A DNA stretch of 36,493 nucleotides from Fonticula alba ATCC 38817 (lineage: Eukaryota; Protista; Nucleariida): NCBI GenBank assembly GCA_000388065.2, contig KB932203.1; one strand, 5' to 3'. The notes below the pieces were generated by a model. That model had not been told where the DNA came from. It saw only the letters and a list, made by a program, of their open reading frames with translations, and did no database searches. The position numbers were made by a program, and so were the translations under genes. Below are positions 5,965-30,802 of this stretch, in pieces. Each line of letters opens with the position of its first letter. The stretch's first letter is position 1.

Positions 5965-7886
5965 CCCCCCCCCCCCCCGCGGGCGGGGGGGGGGGCGGCG
6001 GGGGCGCCCCGCCCCGCGGGGGGGCCCCTTCTCCCCCCCCCCCCCCCCCTGCCCTCCCGGGGGCCCGGGGGACGAGGCGGGGGGGGGTGGGGACACGAGG
6101 GGGGGGGGGGGGGGGGGGGGGGGGCGGGGGCGCGTTGCGCGCGGGGGGCGGAGGCGCAGCCCCCTCCCCCCCCCCCCTGGGTGCTTGTATGGGGCATCGT
6201 TGTGGCCGGTCCCGGTCGTGGCAGGTGACCGCACGACAAAGCCCCGGGCAGCCACCCTGGCGGGCGACCCCCTTCCAAGTGCGTGACATGGCCTCGCGGT
6301 GGCGAGAGCCTGGCATAAGCTGGAGGCTTGCCCTTTCCCCTGTGCCCCTTCCATCTCCCCTGCCTGCACTTGGGTGTGGTGCTCTGCGCCCCGATTGTGA
6401 TGGTGCTCTGGCGTGGGCGTTTCGCCCGGCGGAGGTGACTGCCCGAAGAGTCGACAATGGGGCAAAAGCGCGCCAGGGGGCATTTAAGATGCAAGCCCCA
6501 AATGCCCCGGTCCTTCCTGGAAGGTGTGGCTGCCCCCTGGGCGTTGGTGCTTTTTGGGGGCATGCGATCACCTCAAGAAGGGGGAGGGGGAGGCACGAGG
6601 AAGCAGCCCGAGGCGCATCTCACAGTGTGGCATGCAGCGACGACTTTACACGAGGGCATGCTGGATTGCATCTCCCCCCCCCCCCCCTCCCCCAAATGTG
6701 ACACACACGCGATGCCACCCAGAATCAAACAAAAACACGGTGGAGAGCCGGACACCCCGACACCCCGACACCCCGACACACACACACACACACACACGCG
6801 CGCGCGCACGCGCGCGCAAAGCCGGATGTGCTGGCCTGCAAAAACTCGGGTGTTTTTCTCTCTCGAGCCTAATGATTTGGTATTGGGAAATTTACATTTG
6901 CTGGTGTATATATAACTTTTCTTTCCCCTAATGATGAATATCGGGCGCAACAGGCGGAGGCGTCCATGTCGGCGAGTAGCAGGCGCGTGTGCATGCGCAT
7001 GTCTCAACAGTGCGGGGAGGGGGGGGGGAGGAGGGAGGGGCAGGAGGGGGCCCGGAGCCGAGGCAAGGAGCGACGGTAGGGGGCACTCACATGCGGCATA
7101 GGCGTTGGAAGTCCTGTGCGCGCCTGTGGGATCGGCGCCACTCGGCGAGCTCTCTGCCTTTCCCCCCCCCCCCCCCCCCCCCGCTCACTCACTCGCGCTC
7201 GACCTCTTTTCCTCTCTCTCTCTCTCTGTCTCTCTTTCTCTCTCTCTCCCTCATCCAGGCCCTTGTCCGCTGAGGGGCGAATAGCGGCGCGGAGGAGAGC
7301 GAGGGCACACAGCAGATGCGATGCGATGTGTGCGCGCATGTGCTTGTGTGTGTGTGTGTGGGTCCTCGTCCTGATTCTCCACACGAGGCGGAGAGCTTCG
7401 GAGGAGGAAACATGCGATTAACCGCATGGACTTTCTTCTTTTTTTCTTTTTTGTGCTTTTTCAGTTTTTGCTCGGCCCTTCACACGGCACGCACGCACGT
7501 CGCGCGTTTCCGCACCCAGACCCGGAAGACGGGGCCGGAAGGGCGGGGGAGGAGATGCACGGGCCGCATGCGAGACACACATGGGCTCGGGAGCCGGGCC
7601 TGGCACGAGGCCGAGCTTTTTCCCGGCGCATACGGAGGCGCACCACAGGTCGCGCGGGCGCAACACCTCTCACGACGAGCCGATGTGTACCGAGAAGGAG
7701 CGAGGCAGGGAGCGGAGGACGAGGAGGAAGAGAAGGAGGCGGCGGTGGCGGCGGGCAGAAGAGAGGCGCCAAGGAAAAGAGGTCACGGCAGGGGCCATCC
7801 GCCCGGCCTCGCATGCGCACACGCACACGCACACGCACAAAGTGCCGTGTGGCACACTCCCCGCGGGTGCCCTCTCTCTCTCTCTC

Positions 7887-8723
7887 TCAGTTGAAGACAC
7901 ACTCGCAGCAGTTGGTCACCTGGTTGCTGCCGGGGTTGGCGCAACGGCCGCCGGAAGTGCCGACCACCTGGCTCTTGCACCACTCAGTGCAGTTCTGGAT
8001 GTTGGTCCCGGTGAGGCAGTCCTTGCACCCGGCTGGAGAGGGCGCGCGCGCGCGCGCACACATACACACACACACGGAGGGCACCCACGGAGCCGGGGAA
8101 GCCCCGCGAGGGGAGAGGGGAAGGGCGGATGTTTTCGGTCAGGCGCGCTCGGCCAACATGGGGCATAGTGCCCTTCGCAGGAGCGGCGGGCCCCCACAAT
8201 TAAGCAGCCTGGTGTGTGCATATGCCCGTGCGTGCTTCGTGTGCAGCAAGTATGGACCAGAGAGGGCCGGGCGCGGGGGCGCGGGGGCGCGGGGGCGCGG
8301 GCAGGAGGCCCAGTGGAACGTACACTTCTCGAAGCAGTTGGTCAGGCAGTCGGCGCCGATCTGGTCGACGTCGCGGGCGAAGTAGTGCAGCTCGAAGCGC
8401 GGCTCATCCGGGCACCCGGCGCGGCAGGTCTTCCGGTTCTGGCTGTCATACTCGATGGTGCCGAGATCCTTGCAGCAGAAGGGGGTGCCATGGTGGGCAA
8501 TGCCGTGGCCGGCACCGACGGTGATGCCGGACTGGCGGCTGCCGCTGTCGATCAGGCAGGACTTACGGTTGACCACGAAGTTGGGCATGCTGGCGCGGGC
8601 GCTGAGACCCACACCGTCGTAGACGGTCCGGGTGTTGGACTGGACGAGGCCGATGTCGGCGGTGGCCAGCGAGATGAGGCTGGCCACCAGGACGACGAGG
8701 GTGAGGGACATCTTCTTGAACAT
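7887..8723 (-). CDS. Small secreted cysteine-rich protein, 181 aa, 2 exons, with C-terminal CS-alpha-beta (defensin-like) module
   Basis: Exon 1 is 8723-8324 (ATG in the context aaccATG) and exon 2 is 8032-7887 (TGA). The phase-1 intron runs GTACGT...CTCTCCAG. Signal peptide MFKKMSLTLVVLVASLISLATA, 15 Cys, strongly C/G-ending codons. Confidence 0.85.
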
Positions 8724-8751
8724 GGTTACGGGGGTCTGTGTGTGTGTGCGC

Positions 8752-8792
<41 letters not shown>

Positions 8793-8963
8793 TGTGTTCC
8801 GTGAGAAAGGAGCCGGAGTGGGGGGGGGGAGAGGAGGTGAGAAAAGCCGAGAAGGTATGGGAAAGGAGCGGGGGGGGGGGGGGGGGGGTAAGTCACAGAG
8901 GGGCCATAGCGCGGGGAGAAAAAATAGGACGCTTCGTTGTTTGCTCGCCGGAGGCAGGCCACC

Positions 8964-11241: not shown

Positions 11242-14200
11242 TCCGCCCCTTTTCTGGGCCACCTCCCAAGTAAAGCGTGCCCACAGAGCAGGAGGGAGGC
11301 CGCGAGGCGGGGGGACGCCTGGGCGACCGCGCTGCGCCCGAAAGCCACGGAGGCCTGGAGCCCCTGCCCCTCGACCGGGGCGCCGGGCATCAAACGCCGG
11401 GGGCGGTCGGAGCATTCCTCGTACCGGAAGCGACCGGCCAGCCGCTCGGCCAGACCCCTTCCACGGCCCCCCCTCACCGCCGCCTCGAGCACGCTAGGCA
11501 ACGGCAGGAGCGCCGAGGCCCGGCAGGATCCGGGGGGATGACGCCGGTGCCGGAGTCGGCCCGCCCAGCTCCCCCAGGGGCTGGCCCCACACATGCACGG
11601 CCGTGAGGGGGAGGCGGGAGGCGGGAGGCTGCCCCACAGCCCCGGGAGTGGGGGCGAGCCTGGGACGAGGTGCCGCCAAAGTGACACCAAGGGAGGCAGG
11701 ACAAGGGCGGGCAGGATGCCCGCGCGCCTCGCGTGGCAGGACGGGCCCATGCTGGAGACCCCGCTATCGCGCAGGCAAGGGACCCGCGGACACGGCGCTG
11801 TCGAGCAGCCCGCCGGGAAATTAACACCACCGCGGCCACCGGAGGGGCTGGCCGACAAACATCGCAGCGCACGAGGAGCATGGCAGGGCGGTGTTGGTGG
11901 AGATTTCGCACACCGCACTCGCCAGACTGGGGCAGAAGGGGGTGGGGGAGGGCCGAGTGCTGCAACATTGCCCGGAAGGACGAGGCCCCGCCGCCATTGA
12001 CGGCCAGCGCCCTTGCTGGCGCGCCCCGGAGGTGCGGCCAAAAATCGAGGCACCCCGGAAATGACCCGTCGTGCGCGCCCGGCAAACGCACGCCAATATT
12101 ACCCTGGCGCCGACGCCACATCGAGGAGAGCAAGGGCGGCGGCCGCCGTGCCTCCGGGTCGACGACACCGTCGACCGGCCCCGTGGTTCTCCCGCCGCCC
12201 CCCCCATCCCCCCTGTGGACGACTCGCCGAGGCTAAATCATTGGCGGACGACCGCCATGCACACTGACGGAGGATTGCACCCGAGCCTGCGCGAACCCCA
12301 CGTGGGGGTCGCATTGCGTGCACGCCTGCCCGAGGGCAGACGGGTGGGCATATTGCATGGGCGCTCTTGCCAAGCGCCTGCCCCCGCGCCGGTCGCAGCC
12401 ACTCCACTCGAGCACCGCTGCCATGCTCCAACGCCGGCCCCGGTGGCCGAGGGCCGACGCACAGGAGCAAAGGGGGCCTGGACGTGGGAGGCCCGGCCCT
12501 GGCGCATGACGCATTGCGTCTGAGCCCCACGCTGCGAGCCCCCCGCCCCCTCGTCCGACGCTGCGCTGGCCCGGCCCTCTGCCGCCCCCCCCCCTCCCGA
12601 ACGCCACAGGCCCCTGGAGCTGTCCAGCACAGACGCCATCCGGGCCCGGGGTAACTGTCCGAGGGGCGCGGTTCGCTCATGGGGCGCAGTCGAAGGGCAA
12701 GGCGCCAGTCAAGCAGCCCGCGGCGTCTGCGCTACTCGGAAGCAGGGCGAGCAGCGCCGCCGGCCAGTCGCCCCAACGATGGCAGATGCGGGCCTCTGCG
12801 CCCGCGGCACTGTTAATAGGCCCTGTCCTTCGGCTCGAAGAGGGCCGGGGAAGGGGCCACTCCCCCGACGTTCCCCCTGCCTTTAACCCGGCCTGCCGCC
12901 CAAACTGCCCCCTCGGCCGCGTAGCCGCCGGGCTTTCGGTCGGAAGGCAGACCGGGCCCAGCATGCCCCCGGTGTCGGGTCCCCGGTGCCCGCGGTAAGT
13001 ACCGGCCACGGACATGTCGCTGCGCCAACTGGCCTCGTGCCCTTTCGTACCCTGGGGCGGGCTGCCGCTTGTCGCACCGAATCCGGAAGCCGCGCATGCA
13101 TGCCAAGGAGCCGCCACCCAGGCGGGGCATCTCCACCGCCGCCGAGACTTGGGTGTTGCGGCGAGCCTCCCCCCCCCCCTACCCCACGGCGTGTGGAGCA
13201 TTGCCATCAAGGCAGAGCATCTTTCAGACCCCTTTCCAACCCCTCCCCCGCCTCGCATCGCCGCGTGGGCGCTCAAGGGCAATACACGCTTGTACGCGCA
13301 CCCGAACACACACGCACAGCAGCCCGGCCCGGCGCCCCGGAGCCCGCCTAACGCGTCCCCACGCGACCGAGGGGGGGGGGGNNNNNNNNNNNNNNNNNNN
13401 NNNNNNNNNNNNNNNNNNNNNNNNNNNNNNNNNNNNNNNNNNNNNNNNNNNNNNNNNNNNNNNNNNNNNNNNNNNNNNNNNNNNNNNNNNNNNNNNNNNN
13501 NNNNNNNNNNNNNNNNNNNNNNNNNNNNNNNNNNNNNNNNNNNNNNNNNNNNNNNNNNNNNNNNNNNNNNNNNNNNNNNNNNNNNNNNNNNNNNNNNNNN
13601 NNNNNNNNNNNNNNNNNNNNNNNNNNNNNNNNNNNNNNNNNNNNNNNNNNNNNNNNNNNNNNNNNNNNNNNNNNNNNNNNNNNNNNNNNNNNNNNNNNNN
13701 NNNNNNNNNNNNNNNNNNNNNNNNNNNNNNNNGGGGGCGGGGACGGTCAGAGGGGCAGGGGCAGACAGGGAGGGCCTGCGTGGGATGTTGCCGTCCGTCG
13801 TGGTTATATCCATCCGATGGGCATGGGCATGGGGATGTGCACCGCGCATGAAGGAACAACGCCCGGCTCGGGAAAGGTCGACATGGACATGCGAAAATAA
13901 TAGACATGCCGCCCGCAAACGGCAGCCGGCGGCTAACACGAACCACCGCCGGGATTGTGGGGTGGCGAATGTTAATACCCGCTTGATTGTGGGTGTGATA
14001 CCACGGCGTGCATGTGATGTGTCACGGACACATGGTGCTACTCGAGTGGCACCACCGCCATCATCCGAGCGTTGGGACATGCGATGTTTCGATGCGAGCC
14101 CCGGCCTGCGCGCGCGCGTGTGTGTGTGTGCTTGCGTGCTTGTGCGTAAGTGTGTCAAAGTGTGATCTGGCCCCGGAGGACACGGGCAGGATGGCGCCGG

Positions 14201-22018: not shown

Positions 22019-25000
22019 ACCCGGGGGCAAAAGAGCACCAACAATCCGCCCGCGGAGAGATGCTCCCCCGGGGCCGGGCACCGCGCCCGAGAGGGAGGAA
22101 AAAAGGCCGATAGGGGGTGGTTCGAAGCAACACAAGCCAACCGGCCGCGCGACGGTCGGCCTGAGGGTTCGGCGCACGGCCGTGCAACTCCGGCCCGGGG
22201 CACATGTGGCCGCATCCGCTGCTTCGGCCTCTTCTGCGCGCGGCCAGCGCCGGAGATCCCCCCCCCCCCCCCCCCCCCCCCCTCACGACGCCCTGGCCGG
22301 GCGAGGGCGCGAGGATGCTGCACTTTCCATCCCGCCCCCCCCCCCCCGGGTGCGGACCGCCCCGGCCGGCCCGAAGAAGACAAGCGAGCAAGCAATCGAG
22401 CAGGTCCGACGGCTGAGGGCGGGAGGCGCTGGGCGTGGGATTGACATTTATAATAATGACCAAATATCGCCTGGGCTATTACCTTCCGGGTGGGAGAAAA
22501 GCTCTGACCCCCCCCCCGCCCCCCCCCCCGATGCTCGCGCAGTGGGGCCGGCCACCGTGCGCGCTTGTCCCACCTCTCCCTCGGCCGGGCTCCCTCTCGC
22601 TCTCTCTGTGCCTCCCCTCGCCCGGGCGTCGGAATAAAGCCCCTCCAAAGGGGCCGAGTTTCGTCGACTGCCCGTCCCCCGCCCCGGCCTCTAGCTGCCT
22701 GCCTCATGGGTCCCTTGTCGGACTTTGTCCGTCGCCGGCCTATGCTGTGGCATCATTTCTGGGAGGCGAGGCTGGGAGGGGGGGGGGGGGGAGTCACGGT
22801 GTGGGAGTGCCGCGGTTCGCGGCTGCGCCAGCCTGCCGGGCCCGGCGCGCGCCCCGGCCAGCCCGGCGCCGCCGAGGAGCCAGGTGACGGCCCTCGGATG
22901 CCGACGCGCCCTGTCTGCCAACGGAGGAGGCTTACAGATCCGGAGAAGTAGCTCCCAGGTACTGGGGAATTCCTGTGTGTGTGTGGGGCTGTGCGCGGGC
23001 GTGGGGGGGGGCGCGCGCGCGTACACGCGGAAATGGGCGACGCGCTACGGGCTTTGGGGCCGGGGATTCTGCAAACGTGATCACCAGATGGGTGGTCAGC
23101 CGACCAGGACTGACCCACCGGCCAGACCGGTTTGTGCCGAGGCGCCCGGGCGTCGGGGCCGTTTAATAAAAGCCGCCCAGAGCATCCGGTCGAGGCGGGC
23201 AGGGGGGGGGGGGGGGGGCCTTCCCCGGGGAATGCCCACCAAGGAGAAACGATATTCTGCCGCGGCTGGCCGGCGCGGTAAACAAGTTCCCGCGGCAGAA
23301 GCGTGAAATTGTGCCCCCCCCCTCCCCCTGCCCCCGCGGTCCCCGGCTCCCGGCTGCCCCCGGCCGATGATGCAGGTTGGCCGACCCTGGCGAGGGAGGG
23401 GCCGGCGGACCGGCAAATATACCCCCTACCCCGGACTCCGGGAGGATCTAAACCTAGGCTCTCGGGCGTTGGCCCCGGCGCCGGGCGCCGGTCGGGTCCT
23501 CGCCCGGCGGCGCCGCCCCGGCCTGCTCCCCATATGGCATGGGGCTTTTTCCTTTATTTCTGGCCCGGGGATGCGTCCATCCCCCCTGGGGCCCCTCCGG
23601 CGGGCGCCCGCCGAGTCGAGCTTCTTGCCCCCGGCCCGGGCCCGGCGTAGCGTCGTTCGGGCCCGGGCCGAAGGAGCAGCACGCTCCGACGGGGAATCCC
23701 CCATCGAGGTGACCATGTTCCGCGCGGTCAACGTAGGCGCCGACGGACGGCCCTCCTGCCGGGCGTCCGAGGTGTCGGTCCCCCCTCCGGCGGGGGGAGC
23801 CCGGGCCCGGCCATCCGTGTGCATGTCATCGTGGCCGTCCGGTGGCTGCTGCCCACACCTCTCCGGGCGCAAGATCCCGGGCCTCCAGGCCGGCCGGGGG
23901 CGCCGCGGCGCCCACAAGCAGGCATCTCCGCCAACCGCAATGCGTGTCTGGCCGAGAGAGGGAGAGAGAGAGATGGAGAGAGATGGAGAGAGAGAGAGAG
24001 AGCCCAAACAAGAGGGCTGGCGAAAAAGCTCCCGAGAGTGAGAGCAGGCTGCCTGCCCCCTGGGGCGGGGGGCGGCACCTGTGTTTCCCGTCGGCCAGCC
24101 GCCGAAACTGCACGCGGGAACTCCGGCGCGCGCTGAGGCGTGCGTGCGTGCATGCGTGTGTGTGTTGGCGGGTGGGTCGGGTGGGTCGGGTGTCACCGCT
24201 CCAGAGCACGCACACGCATGCCCCAAGCGCGCGACTGGCCGGGGCGCGGCTCCCCGCCCCGCGGCTCTGTCTGGAGGTGGTCGGCCCCCTGGGGCGTTTT
24301 CTTCGTCCCCCGGGCCCCTTCTCTCTGCCCAGCTGGCGATCTCGAACCGCAGGCGTGTTCCCATCGTCCCCCCCCCCCCCCCGCGCCCCCGAGCTCGCCC
24401 GGTGGAGCCGGGTGGCCCGCGGGCGTCTTGATCGAAATGCCTACTCTCGCGGCATTTGCTCATTCCTCGGAAGGGCCGGCCCTCCCGGCCCGGCGGCCGG
24501 TCTTTGGCGCGGTCGCGCCCGGCCGCCGCTTGGCCCTCGTTCCCAGTTTCTTCGGCCCAGGACGCTCGCGCTATGTCCCCTCCTCTACCTCTCGCGCTGT
24601 CTTTGTGCGTCTTTCTCCCCGCCGCTCTCTTGCCCGGCTGCTCGGGCGCGCCAGGGCCCCCNNNNNNNNNNNNNNNNNNNNNNNNNNNNNNNNNNNNNNN
24701 NNNNNNNNNNNNNNNNNNNNNNNNNNNNNNNNNNNNNNNNNNNNNNNNNNNNNNNNNNNNNNNNNNNNNNNNNNNNNNNNNNNNNNNNNNNNNNNNNNNN
24801 NNNNNNNNNNNNNNNNNNNNNNNNNNNNNNNNNNNNNNNNNNNNNNNNNNNNNNNNNNNNNNNNNNNNNNNNNNNNNNNNNNNNNNNNNNNNNNNNNNNN
24901 NNNNNNNNNNNNNNNNNNNNNNNNNNNNNNNNNNNNNNNNNNNNNNNNNNNNNNNNNNNNNNNNNNNNNNNNNNNNNNNNNNNNNNNNNNNNNNNNNNNN

Positions 25001-25297
25001 NNNNNNNNNNNNNNNNNNNNNNNNNNNNNNNNNNNNNNNNNNNNNNNNNNNNNNNNNNNNNNNNNNNNNNNNNNNNNNNNNNNNNNNNNNNNNNNNNNNN
25101 NNNNNNNNNNNNNNNNNNNNNNNNNNNNNNNNNNNNNNNNNNNNNNNNNNNNNNNNNNNNNNNNNNNNNNNNNNNNNNNNNNNNNNNNNNNNNNNNNNNN
25201 NNNNNNNNNNNNNNNNNNNNNNNNNNNNNNNNNNNNNNNNNNNNNNNNNNNNNNNNNNNNNNNNNNNNNNNNNNNNNNNNNNNNNNNNNNCCCCGCC

Positions 25298-26914
25298 ATG
25301 TCCCAGGCGACTGCTCCCTCCGTCGCCGGCCAGGAGGCCGCCCCCCAGGCCGCCCCGCCGAAGCCCGTCGTCGTCGCCGCCGCCGCCGTCCCGGGCCCTG
25401 CCGGCAGCAACTTCTTCATTGTCTTCAAGGACCTTCTGGCCGGTGGTGTCGCCGGCGCCGTGTCCCGTACGGTGGTCTCCCCGCTTGAGCGCATGAAGAT
25501 CCTCTTCCAGGTGCGCCCTCTGCCCGCCATTTGCCGCCCCCCTGCCCCGGCTCCGCCTCGTGCCCGTGCCCGCGAGTGCTGACCCACCCGCCCTACTGTC
25601 GCCCCTCCCCCCCCCCCCCTCCCTCCTCACATGCACATGTACACACCTTTCCTGGATCGTGCACAGGTCCAGGATGGTGCGGCCGACGCCTACCGCGGCA
25701 TCGTGCCCACCCTGCGTAAGATCGCCACCGAGGAGGGCTGGCGCGGCTTCTTCAAGGGCAACGGCACCAACGTCATTCGGATCGCCCCCTACTCGGCCAT
25801 TCAGTTCGCCTCCTTTTCTCAGTACAAGAAGGTGCGCCGAATTCCCCGCCGCACCCGCACCCGCACCCGCCCCCCCCCCCCTCCCCCCTGCCCTCTCTGC
25901 TCGCATGCGCGGCTGTCCTGCCTCTCCGTCTATCTCTCTCTCTCCCCCTCCCCATGCGCCTGCGCACACATGCACACACCTCGCCCCCTACTCACCTGCC
26001 GGCCTGTAGATTGCCCTCTCCATCACCGGGACCGAGTACCTCGCCCCGGTCCCCAGCCTGATTGCCGGTGCCTGTGCCGGTATCACCTCCTCCACCATGA
26101 CCTACCCACTGGACATCATTCGGACCCGGCTGTCCGTCCAGACCGACGGTTCGTCACTCCGGCTCCCTCCACCTCGCAGCGCCCCCCCTCCCCCCTCCTG
26201 ACCCAGGCGTCCCCGCCCCGCCGGCTTGTGCCCCGCTCTCCCGTCTGCCGGTCCGGCTCCCCCTCCCCCCCCCCTCTCTCTCTCTCTCTCAGGCCGCTAT
26301 CGCTCCATGTGGCATGCCATCGCCGAGGTGTACAAGCATGAGGGCGGCGTGCGCGGCCTTTACCGCGGCCTGTCGCCCACCCTGCTCGGTGTGGCCCCTT
26401 ATGTGGCGATCAACTTCACCACCTACGAGACCCTGCGGCGCTTCTTCGCCGAGCAGGAGGCTCTCAAGGATGAGAACCACCACCGCGACCCGAAGAGCAT
26501 CCAGCCCACCGGCCTGCAGAAGTTCTTCTCCGGTGCCGTGGCCGGTGCCACCGCGCAGACCTGTGCGTTTCCCTTTGCCCGCCGTGCTCCCCCCCCCCCT
26601 CCCCCCTACACACACGCATCGCATGCATATGTTTCCCCCTGGTCCCTTACGCTGGCCTCCCCCTTCCCCTCCCGCATCACACCCACGCAGTCACCTACCC
26701 CCTGGATCTGGTTCGTCGGCGTATGCAGATGATGGGCATGCCCGACTGCCGGTACCGCTACTCCAGCACCCTTGACGCCTTCCGGACCATCGCCCGTGTG
26801 GAGGGGATACGCGGCCTCTTTAAGGGCATGTTGCCCAACTACCTGAAGGTGGTCCCCCTGATGGGTGTTAACTTCCTCGTCTACGAGTGGTGCAAGCGCC
26901 TCCTCAACCCTTGA
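25298..26914 (+). CDS. Mitochondrial carrier (SLC25), YPR011C / plant ADNT1 / SLC25A42-like adenine-nucleotide or CoA-type carrier, 336 aa, 5 exons
   Basis: Exons 25298-25510, 25667-25831, 26010-26148, 26293-26562 and 26691-26914, total 1011 nt. Three carrier signature motifs Px[DE]xx[KR]: [29 protein letters not shown]. Also [21 protein letters not shown]. The start has the context ccgccATG but lies directly after an N gap. Confidence 0.93.
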
Positions 26915-28714: not shown

Positions 28715-29055
28715 CGCCAGCAGTCGTCGTACGGTGGCGGCTCTCGGGCCGGGTCCTCCAGTTCCAACTTCATGACCCGCTCGGACGCCCTGCAAATCCT
28801 TGGTCTCCGGTACGCGTCCCGATGCCTCCGACCTCGTTGCCTCCCCTCCGCCTCCTTGCGCGGCTAACTCATGCTCTGCTGTCCATTTTGTCGCGACTCG
28901 CTGGCAGGTCCCACCCGCCCCCGACCGAGAAGGAGATCGGTGCTGCCTATCGCAAGCTGATGTTGGTGAATCACCCCGACCGCGGCGGCTCGCCTGAGAA
29001 GACTGCCAAAATCAATGAGGCGCGGTCCATCCTCCTGCGTGGGCTTGGTCGGTGA
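28112..29055 (+). CDS. PAM18: PAM18/Tim14/DNAJC19-like mitochondrial J-domain protein with long Q-rich insertion, 281 aa, 2 exons
   Basis: Exons 28112-28809 and 28908-29055, with a phase-2 intron GTACGC...CTAAC...GCAG. N-terminal hydrophobic segment PILFGLAAAATFLGIRY. C-terminal short J-domain MTRSDALQILG...YRKLMLVNHPDRGGSPEKTAKINEARSIL, which follows the PAM18-family pattern. Orthology versus paralogy is not established. Confidence 0.8.
28322..28722 (+). repeat. Coding (CAG)n polyglutamine tracts in the J-protein
   Basis: Q runs near 28322-28353, 28587-28644 and 28678-28722. Confidence 0.9.
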
Positions 29056-29689
29056 GGCGGTGCCGGGGCACCTGTGCGAACGGCAGGCCCCCCCCCCCCC
29101 CNNNNNNNNNNNNNNNNNNNNNNNNNNNNNNNNNNNNNNNNNNNNNNNNNNNNNNNNNNNNNNNNNNNNNNNNNNNNNNNNNNNNNNNNNNNNNNNNNNN
29201 NNNNNNNNNNNNNNNNNNNNNNNNNNNNNNNNNNNNNNNNNNNNNNNNNNNNNNNNNNNNNNNNNNNNNNNNNNNNNNNNNNNNNNNNNNNNNNNNNNNN
29301 NNNNNNNNNNNNNNNNNNNNNNNNNNNNNNNNNNNNNNNNNNNNNNNNNNNNNNNNNNNNNNNNNNNNNNNNNNNNNNNNNNNNNNNNNNNNNNNNNNNN
29401 NNNNNNNNNNNNNNNNNNNNNNNNNNNNNNNNNNNNNNNNNNNNNNNNNNNNNNNNNNNNNNNNNNNNNNNNNNNNNNNNNNNNNNNNNNNNNNNNNNNN
29501 NTCTCTCTCTCTCTCTCTCTCGCGGCTGGAGCAGCCACCCCTCTGTCAATAGATCGATCCACAGCAGCAACATGCGTGCCCCTCGATCCGCCTTTCTCCC
29601 TCCCCCCCTGTCGGCCTGAGTTGTGTACCTGCGGTGGGGCGCACGCGTGACGAGAAAAAGCAGACATCAGGCAAAAAGAATGAGGTTTG

Positions 29690-29762
29690 CGCTCCCGCAC
29701 GGGATCGAACCGCGGACCTTGGGATTAACAGTCCCACGCTCTACCTACTGAGCCACAGGAGC
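29690..29762 (-). tRNA. trnN: tRNA-Asn (GTT), 73 nt, no intron
   Basis: Acceptor stem GCTCCTG/CGGGAGC, D arm GCTC/GAGC, anticodon stem TGGGA-CTGTTAA-TCCCA, T loop TTCGATC, discriminator G. A Pol III terminator (T5) lies downstream at 29673-29677 on the minus strand. Confidence 0.97.
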
Positions 29763-30802
29763 ACACGTGTAGGCGGCCACGAAAGCCATTTATTATTTTC
29801 GGCCAAGCGGCACGCCCTTGCCCCACCTCGACGCGGGCACACGGGATGCTGCCACCTGGCTCACTTCCACACTGCTCCCCCCGCTGCTTGGCCCCTGTCC
29901 TACGCCTACGTGCCTCGCAGGTGAGGCAGGCTGCTCGGGCTCTCTTGCCTCCGTCCTTTGTTCGCCTTTATGATCCCTCCCTGTCCCGCACGGATCCACC
30001 GACGCCAGCCGGCGCCCTTCACGTCCCCAAGGGTCCTCGGGCGGGAACATTTCCTCTGCTCCCCTGGCCCGAAGTAATGGCCTCCCCCCCCCCCCCCCCC
30101 CCTGCTATTCGTGCAACGTCAGACATCATCCTTGGNNNNNNNNNNCCCCGCTGCTATTCGTGCAACGTCAGACATCATCCTTGGGCCCACCGCTAGGATT
30201 GGCTGGCGGCGAAGGGGTCCACTCGCGCGGCCCCGCGACCCCCGTCACACACAGCAGGGAGGTGTCGGCCCTCGGGGCCCCTGCATTGTTTGCTCCTCGG
30301 TGAAGCACGCATCTTGGAGCGGAGCCTTCCGGATGGCAGCCAGGTCTCGCCTGCAAGCGGTCACATAGACCCCCGCCCGCCAGCAGAACGCCTGGTGGCC
30401 CCCACAGACACAGGCCTCAAATGTGGGGAGGACGGCCGAGAGCCGCCACGACACATGCTCGGCAAAGAAAAGAAAAAAGCCCGACCATCATGACGGCTAG
30501 CATGGCAAGAGACAAGCAGGTTGCAGGTGCAACAAAGGAAAAGTTGTATTCAAGAGGGGAGAGAAGGGCGAGAGACAGAGGGAGAGAGAGAGAGAGAGGA
30601 AGGGGGGGGGGGGGAAATGAATCAAGAAGGAGAAAAGGACAGTTGCGTCGGGCGCAGGGGGGGAAATATGAGCAGGGGCAAAATGGGCGGGGGAGGAGGA
30701 GCCGAGGGCGAGGAGAGCGACGCAGGAAGAGGAGCACATCCGGCCCGGCTCCGCGTCCGGTGGGGGTCTCCGCCCCCCCATCCCCCGCCCCTCCCTTGGC
30801 CC

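Follow-up and report, generated by a model that had tools for sequence, protein, structure and literature searches.

A two-exon gene of Fonticula alba encodes a predicted secreted protein with a putative cis-defensin-like module fused to a cysteine-rich domain

To our knowledge, nearly every described defensin of the cysteine-stabilised alpha/beta (CSab) superfamily is a free peptide and comes from a multicellular host or a true fungus. Scorpine-type beta-KTx proteins consist of two parts and carry a defensin-type module on its own exon. In the nasonins of Nasonia the CSab module is also encoded on its own exon, with phase-1 introns at the module borders (PMC2853521). Big defensins have a defensin-type module on its own exon joined to another part (PMC7203481). 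The CSab defensins themselves have a helix that is disulfide-linked to a two- or three-stranded sheet, are presumed to be ancient, and are thought to date back to the ancestor that plants, fungi, and animals share (PMC8670511). Fourth bridges from the n-loop to the c-loop are known in eight-cysteine fungal and Nasonia defensin-like peptides (PMC2853521). Eurocin and plectasin are cationic, about 40 residues long, and contain three disulfides; they originate from a short pre-pro-peptide and have a free N-terminus. Lipid II binding of the plectasin type involves the N-terminus, F2, G3, C4, C37, and His18, and the free N-terminus and the His take part in a network of hydrogen bonds with lipid II (PMC8877149). 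The CSab fold itself is well known, and so is the placing of a defensin module on an exon of its own that follows a phase-1 intron. Here a gene of Fonticula alba that would combine both is described. Fonticula alba is a bacterivorous, slime-mould-like amoeba of the Holomycota, the sister lineage of the Fungi.

The window, meaning the whole stretch of DNA analysed, is 36,493 nucleotides long and comes from contig KB932203.1 of F. alba ATCC 38817. Gene H696_01983 is encoded on the minus strand. The ATG start codon was read from the translation at 8723-8721. Exon 1 (8324..8723, minus strand) is 400 nt long and comprises 133 codons plus one base, the first of a split Ser codon. It is followed by a phase-1 intron of 291 nt (8033..8323, minus strand) with the donor GTACGT and the acceptor CTCTCCAG. 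The border of exon 1 and intron reads AAGT|GTACGT at 8324/8323 and that of intron and exon 2 reads CTCTCCAG| at 8033/8032, with the acceptor at 8034-8033. The split Ser codon is made up of T at 8324 and CC at 8032-8031. Exon 2 (7887..8032, minus strand) begins with the two bases that complete the Ser codon and continues with 47 codons up to a TGA stop at 7889-7887. A word-based protein search showed the spliced product to be letter for letter the public 181-aa protein H696_01983 (P0001), a hypothetical protein of Fonticula alba. The exon 1 product was 100% identical to residues 1-133 of P0001, and the exon 2 product corresponds to residues 134-181. In the searches the two exons served as separate queries, and the joined proteins were taken from the database records P0001 and, for the paralog, P0003.

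The first-pass annotation of this DNA had reported that exon 2 of a secreted protein encodes a module with eight cysteines spaced C-x2-C-x8-C-x3-C-x11-C-x10-CC-x-C. Translation of 7887-8030 on the minus strand gave GCKDC...CECVFN and a stop, which with the split Ser codon is exactly this peptide of 48 residues, and a script returned the same spacing. Its description of exon 2 as a separate coding module was supported. Residues 1-22 (8658..8723, minus strand, read from the translation) were predicted to form a signal peptide. Their n-region, MFKK, is basic and is followed by a hydrophobic core, with A-T-A ahead of the predicted cleavage site, and a comparable hydrophobic leader opens all six homologues. 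The leader is typical of a signal peptide, and secretion as claimed earlier is predicted from sequence. Residues 23-133 (8325..8657, minus strand) form an N-terminal Cys-rich domain in alignment A5. The last 47 residues (7890..8030, minus strand) form the CSab or cis-defensin-like module, as assigned from an AlphaFold2 (AF2) model, structure searches, and Pfam and PDB matches below threshold. H696_01983 is a real two-exon gene for a predicted secreted protein of about 160 mature residues with two predicted disulfide-rich parts.

The gene belongs to a family of about six members, consisting of three F. alba paralogs and three genes from environmental eukaryotes. An exhaustive HMMER pass over 1.84 billion protein representatives (1.84e9) gave seven matches at E <=0.001, of which five (P0001-P0005) were true relatives. 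The protein had earlier been called an orphan and a search of the genome for paralogs had been proposed. This search of the 31.3 Mb F. alba genome found two paralogs, on contigs C7 and C9, and together with the three homologues on contigs of environmental eukaryotes they show that the protein is not an orphan. The C7 paralog (H696_04654, P0003) has both parts, a phase-1 intron with the donor GTGCGT at the same junction, and 8 of 8 exon-2 cysteines. The C9 paralog (H696_05165, P0008) comprises exon 1 followed by a GTGCGT donor at this site, and everything after that reads N. Its public model ends after 150 aa. In the stretch C9:454400-456800 exon 1 of H696_05165 lies at 587-1033 and the N run starts at about 1125. 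Any defensin-like exon of this gene would fall in the N run of the assembly, and all counts for the module given here cover the five readable copies.

Homologue P0002 is from a GC-rich genomic contig of a Logan assembly, is 41% identical, and adjoins a TAF12-like gene. P0004 and P0005 are from one bioreactor metagenome and are both on contigs with eukaryotic genes. One environmental eukaryote thus carries two family members, at L013:4684-5283 and L009:1599-2198 (bioreactor metagenome, PRJNA279279). The P0005 entry consists of exon 1 and intron read-through, and the true exon 2 of its gene comes after a 72-nt phase-1 intron at the same site as in F. alba. A word-based search with the module profile had this kind of sequence as its sole match, an exon-2 ORF of a metagenomic homologue. 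Both parts are contained in one uninterrupted ORF in P0002 and in P0004. Comparison of the contigs of the environmental homologues with F. alba showed no DNA similarity and no synteny. The family is small and lineage-restricted.

The phase-1 site is common to H696_01983, the C7 paralog, the C9 paralog (donor only), and one metagenomic homologue. The donors of all three paralogs are GTACGT or GTGCGT and fit GTRCGY (window 8323-8318; L006:1149-1154; L007:1034-1039). Two homologues (P0002 and P0004) have no intron at the domain border. As the intron is present in one bioreactor member and absent in the other, it was lost or gained within the family. The usual position of the phase-1 intron at the domain border fits exon shuffling, or an intron retained at a module boundary.

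GC-rich DNA such as this holds many long spurious open frames, and exon 2 might be a gene-model artefact that is not joined to exon 1 in vivo, with a Cys-rich frame that is not translated. A transcript or contig look-up for P0001 gave no entry. The artefact is nevertheless very improbable. The two-part architecture and its junction recur in five genes from at least three organisms. Two of these genes are intronless, and the single continuous ORF of P0002 and of P0004 independently shows that one protein contains both parts. The public annotation has the same gene model, and the splice signals agree with the genome consensus.

The five readable modules align at 40-59% identity. Fourteen module columns are invariant in the five homologues, namely G1, C2, C5, C14, C18, G24, G28, R29, C30, P33, S35, C41, C42, and C44, and these include 8 of 8 exon-2 cysteines. 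The loops differ strongly between paralogs while the cysteines are fixed. A CSab regular expression (C..CxxxC..GxC..CxC) matched only the H696_01983 locus in six frames of the 36.5-kb window and gave zero matches in 200 shuffles. As the pattern is conserved in homologues and absent from shuffles it is not due to chance.

Matches of the module to Pfam were all below the curated thresholds, and no Pfam family of the clan was reached. The best Pfam score was for one homologue against PF24552 (Defensin), with an E-value of 0.0013 and 19.2 bits compared to a cut-off of 27. When the PF24552 model was run directly on the F. alba genome there was no match, and the controls were silent too. PF10868 (Defensin_like) gave an E-value of 0.055 in the family; the window copy had an E-value of 0.16 and 13.1 bits against a cut-off of 25.1. 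One homologue matched PF00537 (Toxin_3) with E = 0.081 and 13.6 bits (cut-off 21.5). Family members matched PF00304 (Gamma-thionin) at E 0.39, below the cut-off. The fifth Pfam family listed for the module, PF08117 (Toxin_30), was dismissed as noise at E 8.3.

Searches of PDB sequences pointed the same way. The five top matches of the family profile were the plant defensins 7c31, 1gpt, 1gps, and 1ti5, and cobatoxin. The E-values of the PDB sequence matches were 0.3-4, with those of the plant defensins at 0.45-4.3. With one homologue as the query, 6 of 8 matches were CSab proteins, including cobatoxin, ARD1/heliomicin, and gamma-thionin. The window copy aligns to eurocin with identical C-x3-C-x11-C spacing. 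The sequence evidence for CSab membership is weak but one-sided.

The AF2 model of the module was built from a five-sequence alignment (A3) and had a mean pLDDT of 82.7. It contains a helix at 14-21 that carries C14-T-E-W-C18, the CxxxC of which is invariant in five homologues. Strand 27-30 carries G28-R29-C30 and strand 42-45 carries C42-E-C44, and all of these cysteines and the GR are invariant. The CxxxC helix motif, gamma-core, and terminal CxC named in the first reading were located on a predicted helix and predicted strands. C2 and C41 make up an additional cysteine pair of the module. AF2 predicted no third strand for the module. By analogy with known members, the expected disulfides are C5-C30, C14-C42, and C18-C44, with C2-C41 as the fourth bridge.

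Foldseek against the PDB listed 16 matches, of which 15 were CSab defensins or toxins, with TM scores of 0.4-0.55 and E-values >1. In a wide structure search against 48,161 PDB representatives a Z score >=2 was reached only by eurocin, termicin, and the plant defensin AtD90. Eurocin had a Z score of 2.6 and an rmsd of 3.0 over 34 aligned residues with 35% identity. Termicin and AtD90 each had a Z score of 2.1. A second structural look added plectasin (2.4), MGD-1 (2.2), and ETD151 (2.0). In absolute terms these Z scores, 2.0-2.6, are weak, and they depend on predicted models. Low structural scores are usual for 40-residue peptides. The ESM Atlas model of the C-terminal part matched arthropod-defensin, gamma-thionin, and DEFL clusters with TM scores of 0.54-0.61. 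Both structure predictors may simply recognise the cysteine pattern. Weight is given to the CSab fold because four methods converge on one superfamily. The CSab fold that had been proposed for exon 2, with AlphaFold and Foldseek as the means of checking it, is in keeping with the model of one helix and two strands and with CSab chains being the only ones at Z >=2. On the predicted models a CSab (cis-defensin-type) fold of the module is likely, and the module would be best filed as a divergent new family of the cis-defensin superfamily and not in any named family.

A different reading is that exon 2 is not an independent CSab domain and that its cysteines pair with those of exon 1, notably C126xxxC130, in one larger disulfide-rich fold, which would make the defensin-like prediction an artefact of pattern matching. 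All sequence and structure scores are below significance, which would suit such a fold, as would the fact that the N-terminal domain ends in its own CxxxC four residues ahead of the junction. Unusual features of the module are the CC-x-C arrangement and its preceding loop of 10 residues. The full-length AF2 model is unreliable. It was made from four sequences and had a pLDDT of 50, with 26-71 in the N-terminal domain, and on this poor model interdomain disulfides are possible. Each part can nevertheless be self-contained, with eight cysteines in the module and six invariant ones in the N-terminal domain. Two independent predictors gave the same fold, the weak matches of four methods came together on one superfamily among tens of thousands of possible ones, and the intron is exactly at the predicted domain border. 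The single larger fold is considered improbable and a separate CSab module is preferred.

The six invariant cysteines of the N-terminal domain in alignment A5 are C56, C83, C84, C100, C126, and C130. Conserved motifs are N-x-R...DG, C(F/L)xDxG, CC-x3-G, and C-x3-C-(F/Y). A seventh cysteine of the domain, C104 (codon 8412-8414), is in the motif C-R-x-G-C and is present in four of the six members. It is found in the window copy, the C9 paralog, P0002, and P0005, and is missing from the C7 paralog and P0004. Members with C104 have an odd protein total of 15 cysteines. C104 suggests a free thiol or a disulfide-linked dimer. The fold of the domain is probably all-beta.

Exon 2 had been described as fused to a larger domain of no known kind, and this agrees with the searches made with the 110-residue domain. 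Six N-terminal domains were compared to Pfam and matched no family. There was no match among PDB sequences and no usable match in the ESM Atlas search. The UniRef name of H696_05165 refers to a WSC domain (PF01822). This was rejected as 0 of the 6 N-terminal domains had a Pfam match to it, the genome-wide search found only an unrelated locus on C7, and hhalign against that domain gave a probability of 0.65%. An MBG_2 domain (PF18676) was considered from the match to P0006, a 2731-aa bacterial repeat protein (E = 8e-6, exhaustive search). Many P0006 repeats aligned to residues 17-63 by BLASTP. An hhalign comparison of A5 with 14 P0006 repeats gave a probability of 0.08% and E = 0.54. The P0006 match was rejected because the repeats multiply the VYDG stretch of the window copy, a chance similarity. 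P0007, a PEP-CTERM protein with a GRVQSNVQIGAG repeat, was a low-complexity match.

The best matches overall were eurocin, plectasin, termicin, ARD1, and plant defensins. Eurocin and plectasin were top structural matches and share C-x3-C-x11-C, the GG-x-C turn, and the terminal CxC with the module. The Fonticula module differs from them in its position C-terminal to a 110-residue Cys-rich domain, its neutral to acidic character, and its extra pair C2/C41. Plant defensins and gamma-thionins (PF00304) share with it the eight cysteines and C-x3-C ... G(Y/W)-x-GG-x-C. Plant defensins have a beta1 strand at the N-terminus, and their fourth bridge runs from the first residues to the C-terminal Cys that follows the CxC, whereas the extra Cys of the Fonticula module is directly before the CxC.

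A likeness to long-chain Centruroides beta-toxins had also been suggested. The spacing part of this was retained, as long-chain scorpion sodium-channel toxins are members of the CSab superfamily whose spacing, G-C-K...C-x8-C-x3-C-x11-C, is similar. The specific kinship was not. The window module had no Toxin_3 match and long-chain toxins were absent from the PDB sequence and fold matches. The module has 47 residues compared to 60-70 in long-chain toxins and is without the disulfide of the C-terminal tail. On sequence comparison and predicted structure its nearest relatives appear to be defensins of fungi, insects, and plants, and not the long-chain beta-toxins of scorpions.

In architecture the protein is closest to the two-part proteins on separate exons. 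Big defensins carry a trans-defensin (beta-defensin-like) module, whereas the Fonticula protein carries a CSab module. Its partner is a new 110-residue Cys-rich domain without detectable relatives, unlike the partners in nasonins, big defensins, and scorpine-type proteins. No paper was found in the literature searched that links Fonticula or nucleariids with defensins or that names the genes of the H696_01983 family. What appears to be new is the Cys-rich partner, its permanent fusion to the module, and the occurrence in a holomycotan that is not a fungus.

The explanation favored as a whole, with somewhat better than even confidence, is a two-part secreted family protein with a CSab module, which may act on bacteria. 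The two helix cysteines of CxxxC would be linked to the two of CxC on the last strand, and the GRC strand to the first canonical Cys, with C2-C41 as the fourth bridge. The two domains would remain fused after secretion because there is no conserved basic or dibasic processing site at the junction. The junction sequences are FEK-S-GC, YRSG-GC, FGMG-GC, and FAM-D-GC. The CSab module might then serve as a rigid target-binding head, with the N-terminal domain supplying targeting or a second activity. The most likely target would be bacterial prey or competitors of the bacterivorous amoeba.

The net charge of the module in the five members is 0 to -3 with a pI of 4.4-6.3. Directly ahead of the second helix Cys the family has W, Y, F, I, or V, where eurocin has His. 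The features of plectasin/eurocin-type lipid II binding were not found in the module, which is fused at its N-terminus, has no His at this position, and is not cationic. The charge of 0 to -3, the fused N-terminus, and the lack of a conserved processing site argue against a classical cationic defensin. The charge, the fused N-terminus, and the lack of this His argue against a plectasin-like mechanism and also count against an antibacterial role.

Many plant defensin-like proteins act as matrix, signalling, or inhibitor units. The Fonticula protein may similarly have kept the CSab fold for another job, as a component of a matrix or stalk, a ligand in adhesion or cell-cell signalling, or an inhibitor of enzymes or proteases. 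The neutral to acidic module in 5 of 5 members would be in line with this, as would its permanent fusion to a larger domain rich in Cys and the lack of a conserved dibasic site at the junction. The His that contacts lipid II is absent (PMC8877149), and in four of six members the number of cysteines is odd, which suggests covalent oligomers. Set against this are the closest structural and sequence neighbours, which are antibacterial and antifungal defensins, the feeding of the organism on bacteria, and the variable loops with fixed cysteines as seen in defence and toxin families. A role in binding, matrix, or signalling that is not antimicrobial is possible and nearly as likely as an antibacterial one. 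Action on bacteria is tentatively put forward as the single most likely role. It is ranked first because the host is bacterivorous and antibacterial defensins of fungi are the closest relatives.

A further and more doubtful reading is that the protein kills prey or serves in defence, with a defensin head joined by exon shuffling to a previously unseen Cys-rich targeting domain. It would then be the first CSab family in unicellular opisthokonts outside the Fungi. If true, the protist ancestors of fungi would have had a CSab module, and the protein would provide a natural example of a defensin inside a larger protein as opposed to a free cationic peptide. A defensin-fold module in the sister lineage of the Fungi is a data point on the age and modularity of the scaffold. 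If the protein acts on bacteria, it would point to a use of the scaffold by a bacterivore that is neither cationic nor plectasin-like. Otherwise it would be a further reuse of the fold as a generic binding module. The claim is modest either way because the fold itself is well known.

Repeats are present in and around the gene. The intron (8033-8323) contains tandem GCGGGGGC repeats at about 8270-8301 and GC/CA dinucleotide runs by the acceptor at about 8040-8075. Microsatellites of (CA)n and (GA)n flank H696_01983 at 8735-8790 and 7868-7886. A C run of >70 bases is located upstream of the gene, from about 9428 to beyond 9500 in the window, and shorter C or G runs are present at 7165-7183 and 8870-8888. 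These long homopolymer runs near the gene give rise to poly-Pro and poly-Gly stretches in spurious ORFs. The window also contains AT-rich islands with a GC content of 0.37-0.50 at 1-2000, 13001-14000, 24001-26000, and 29001-30000, in a background of 0.64-0.76.
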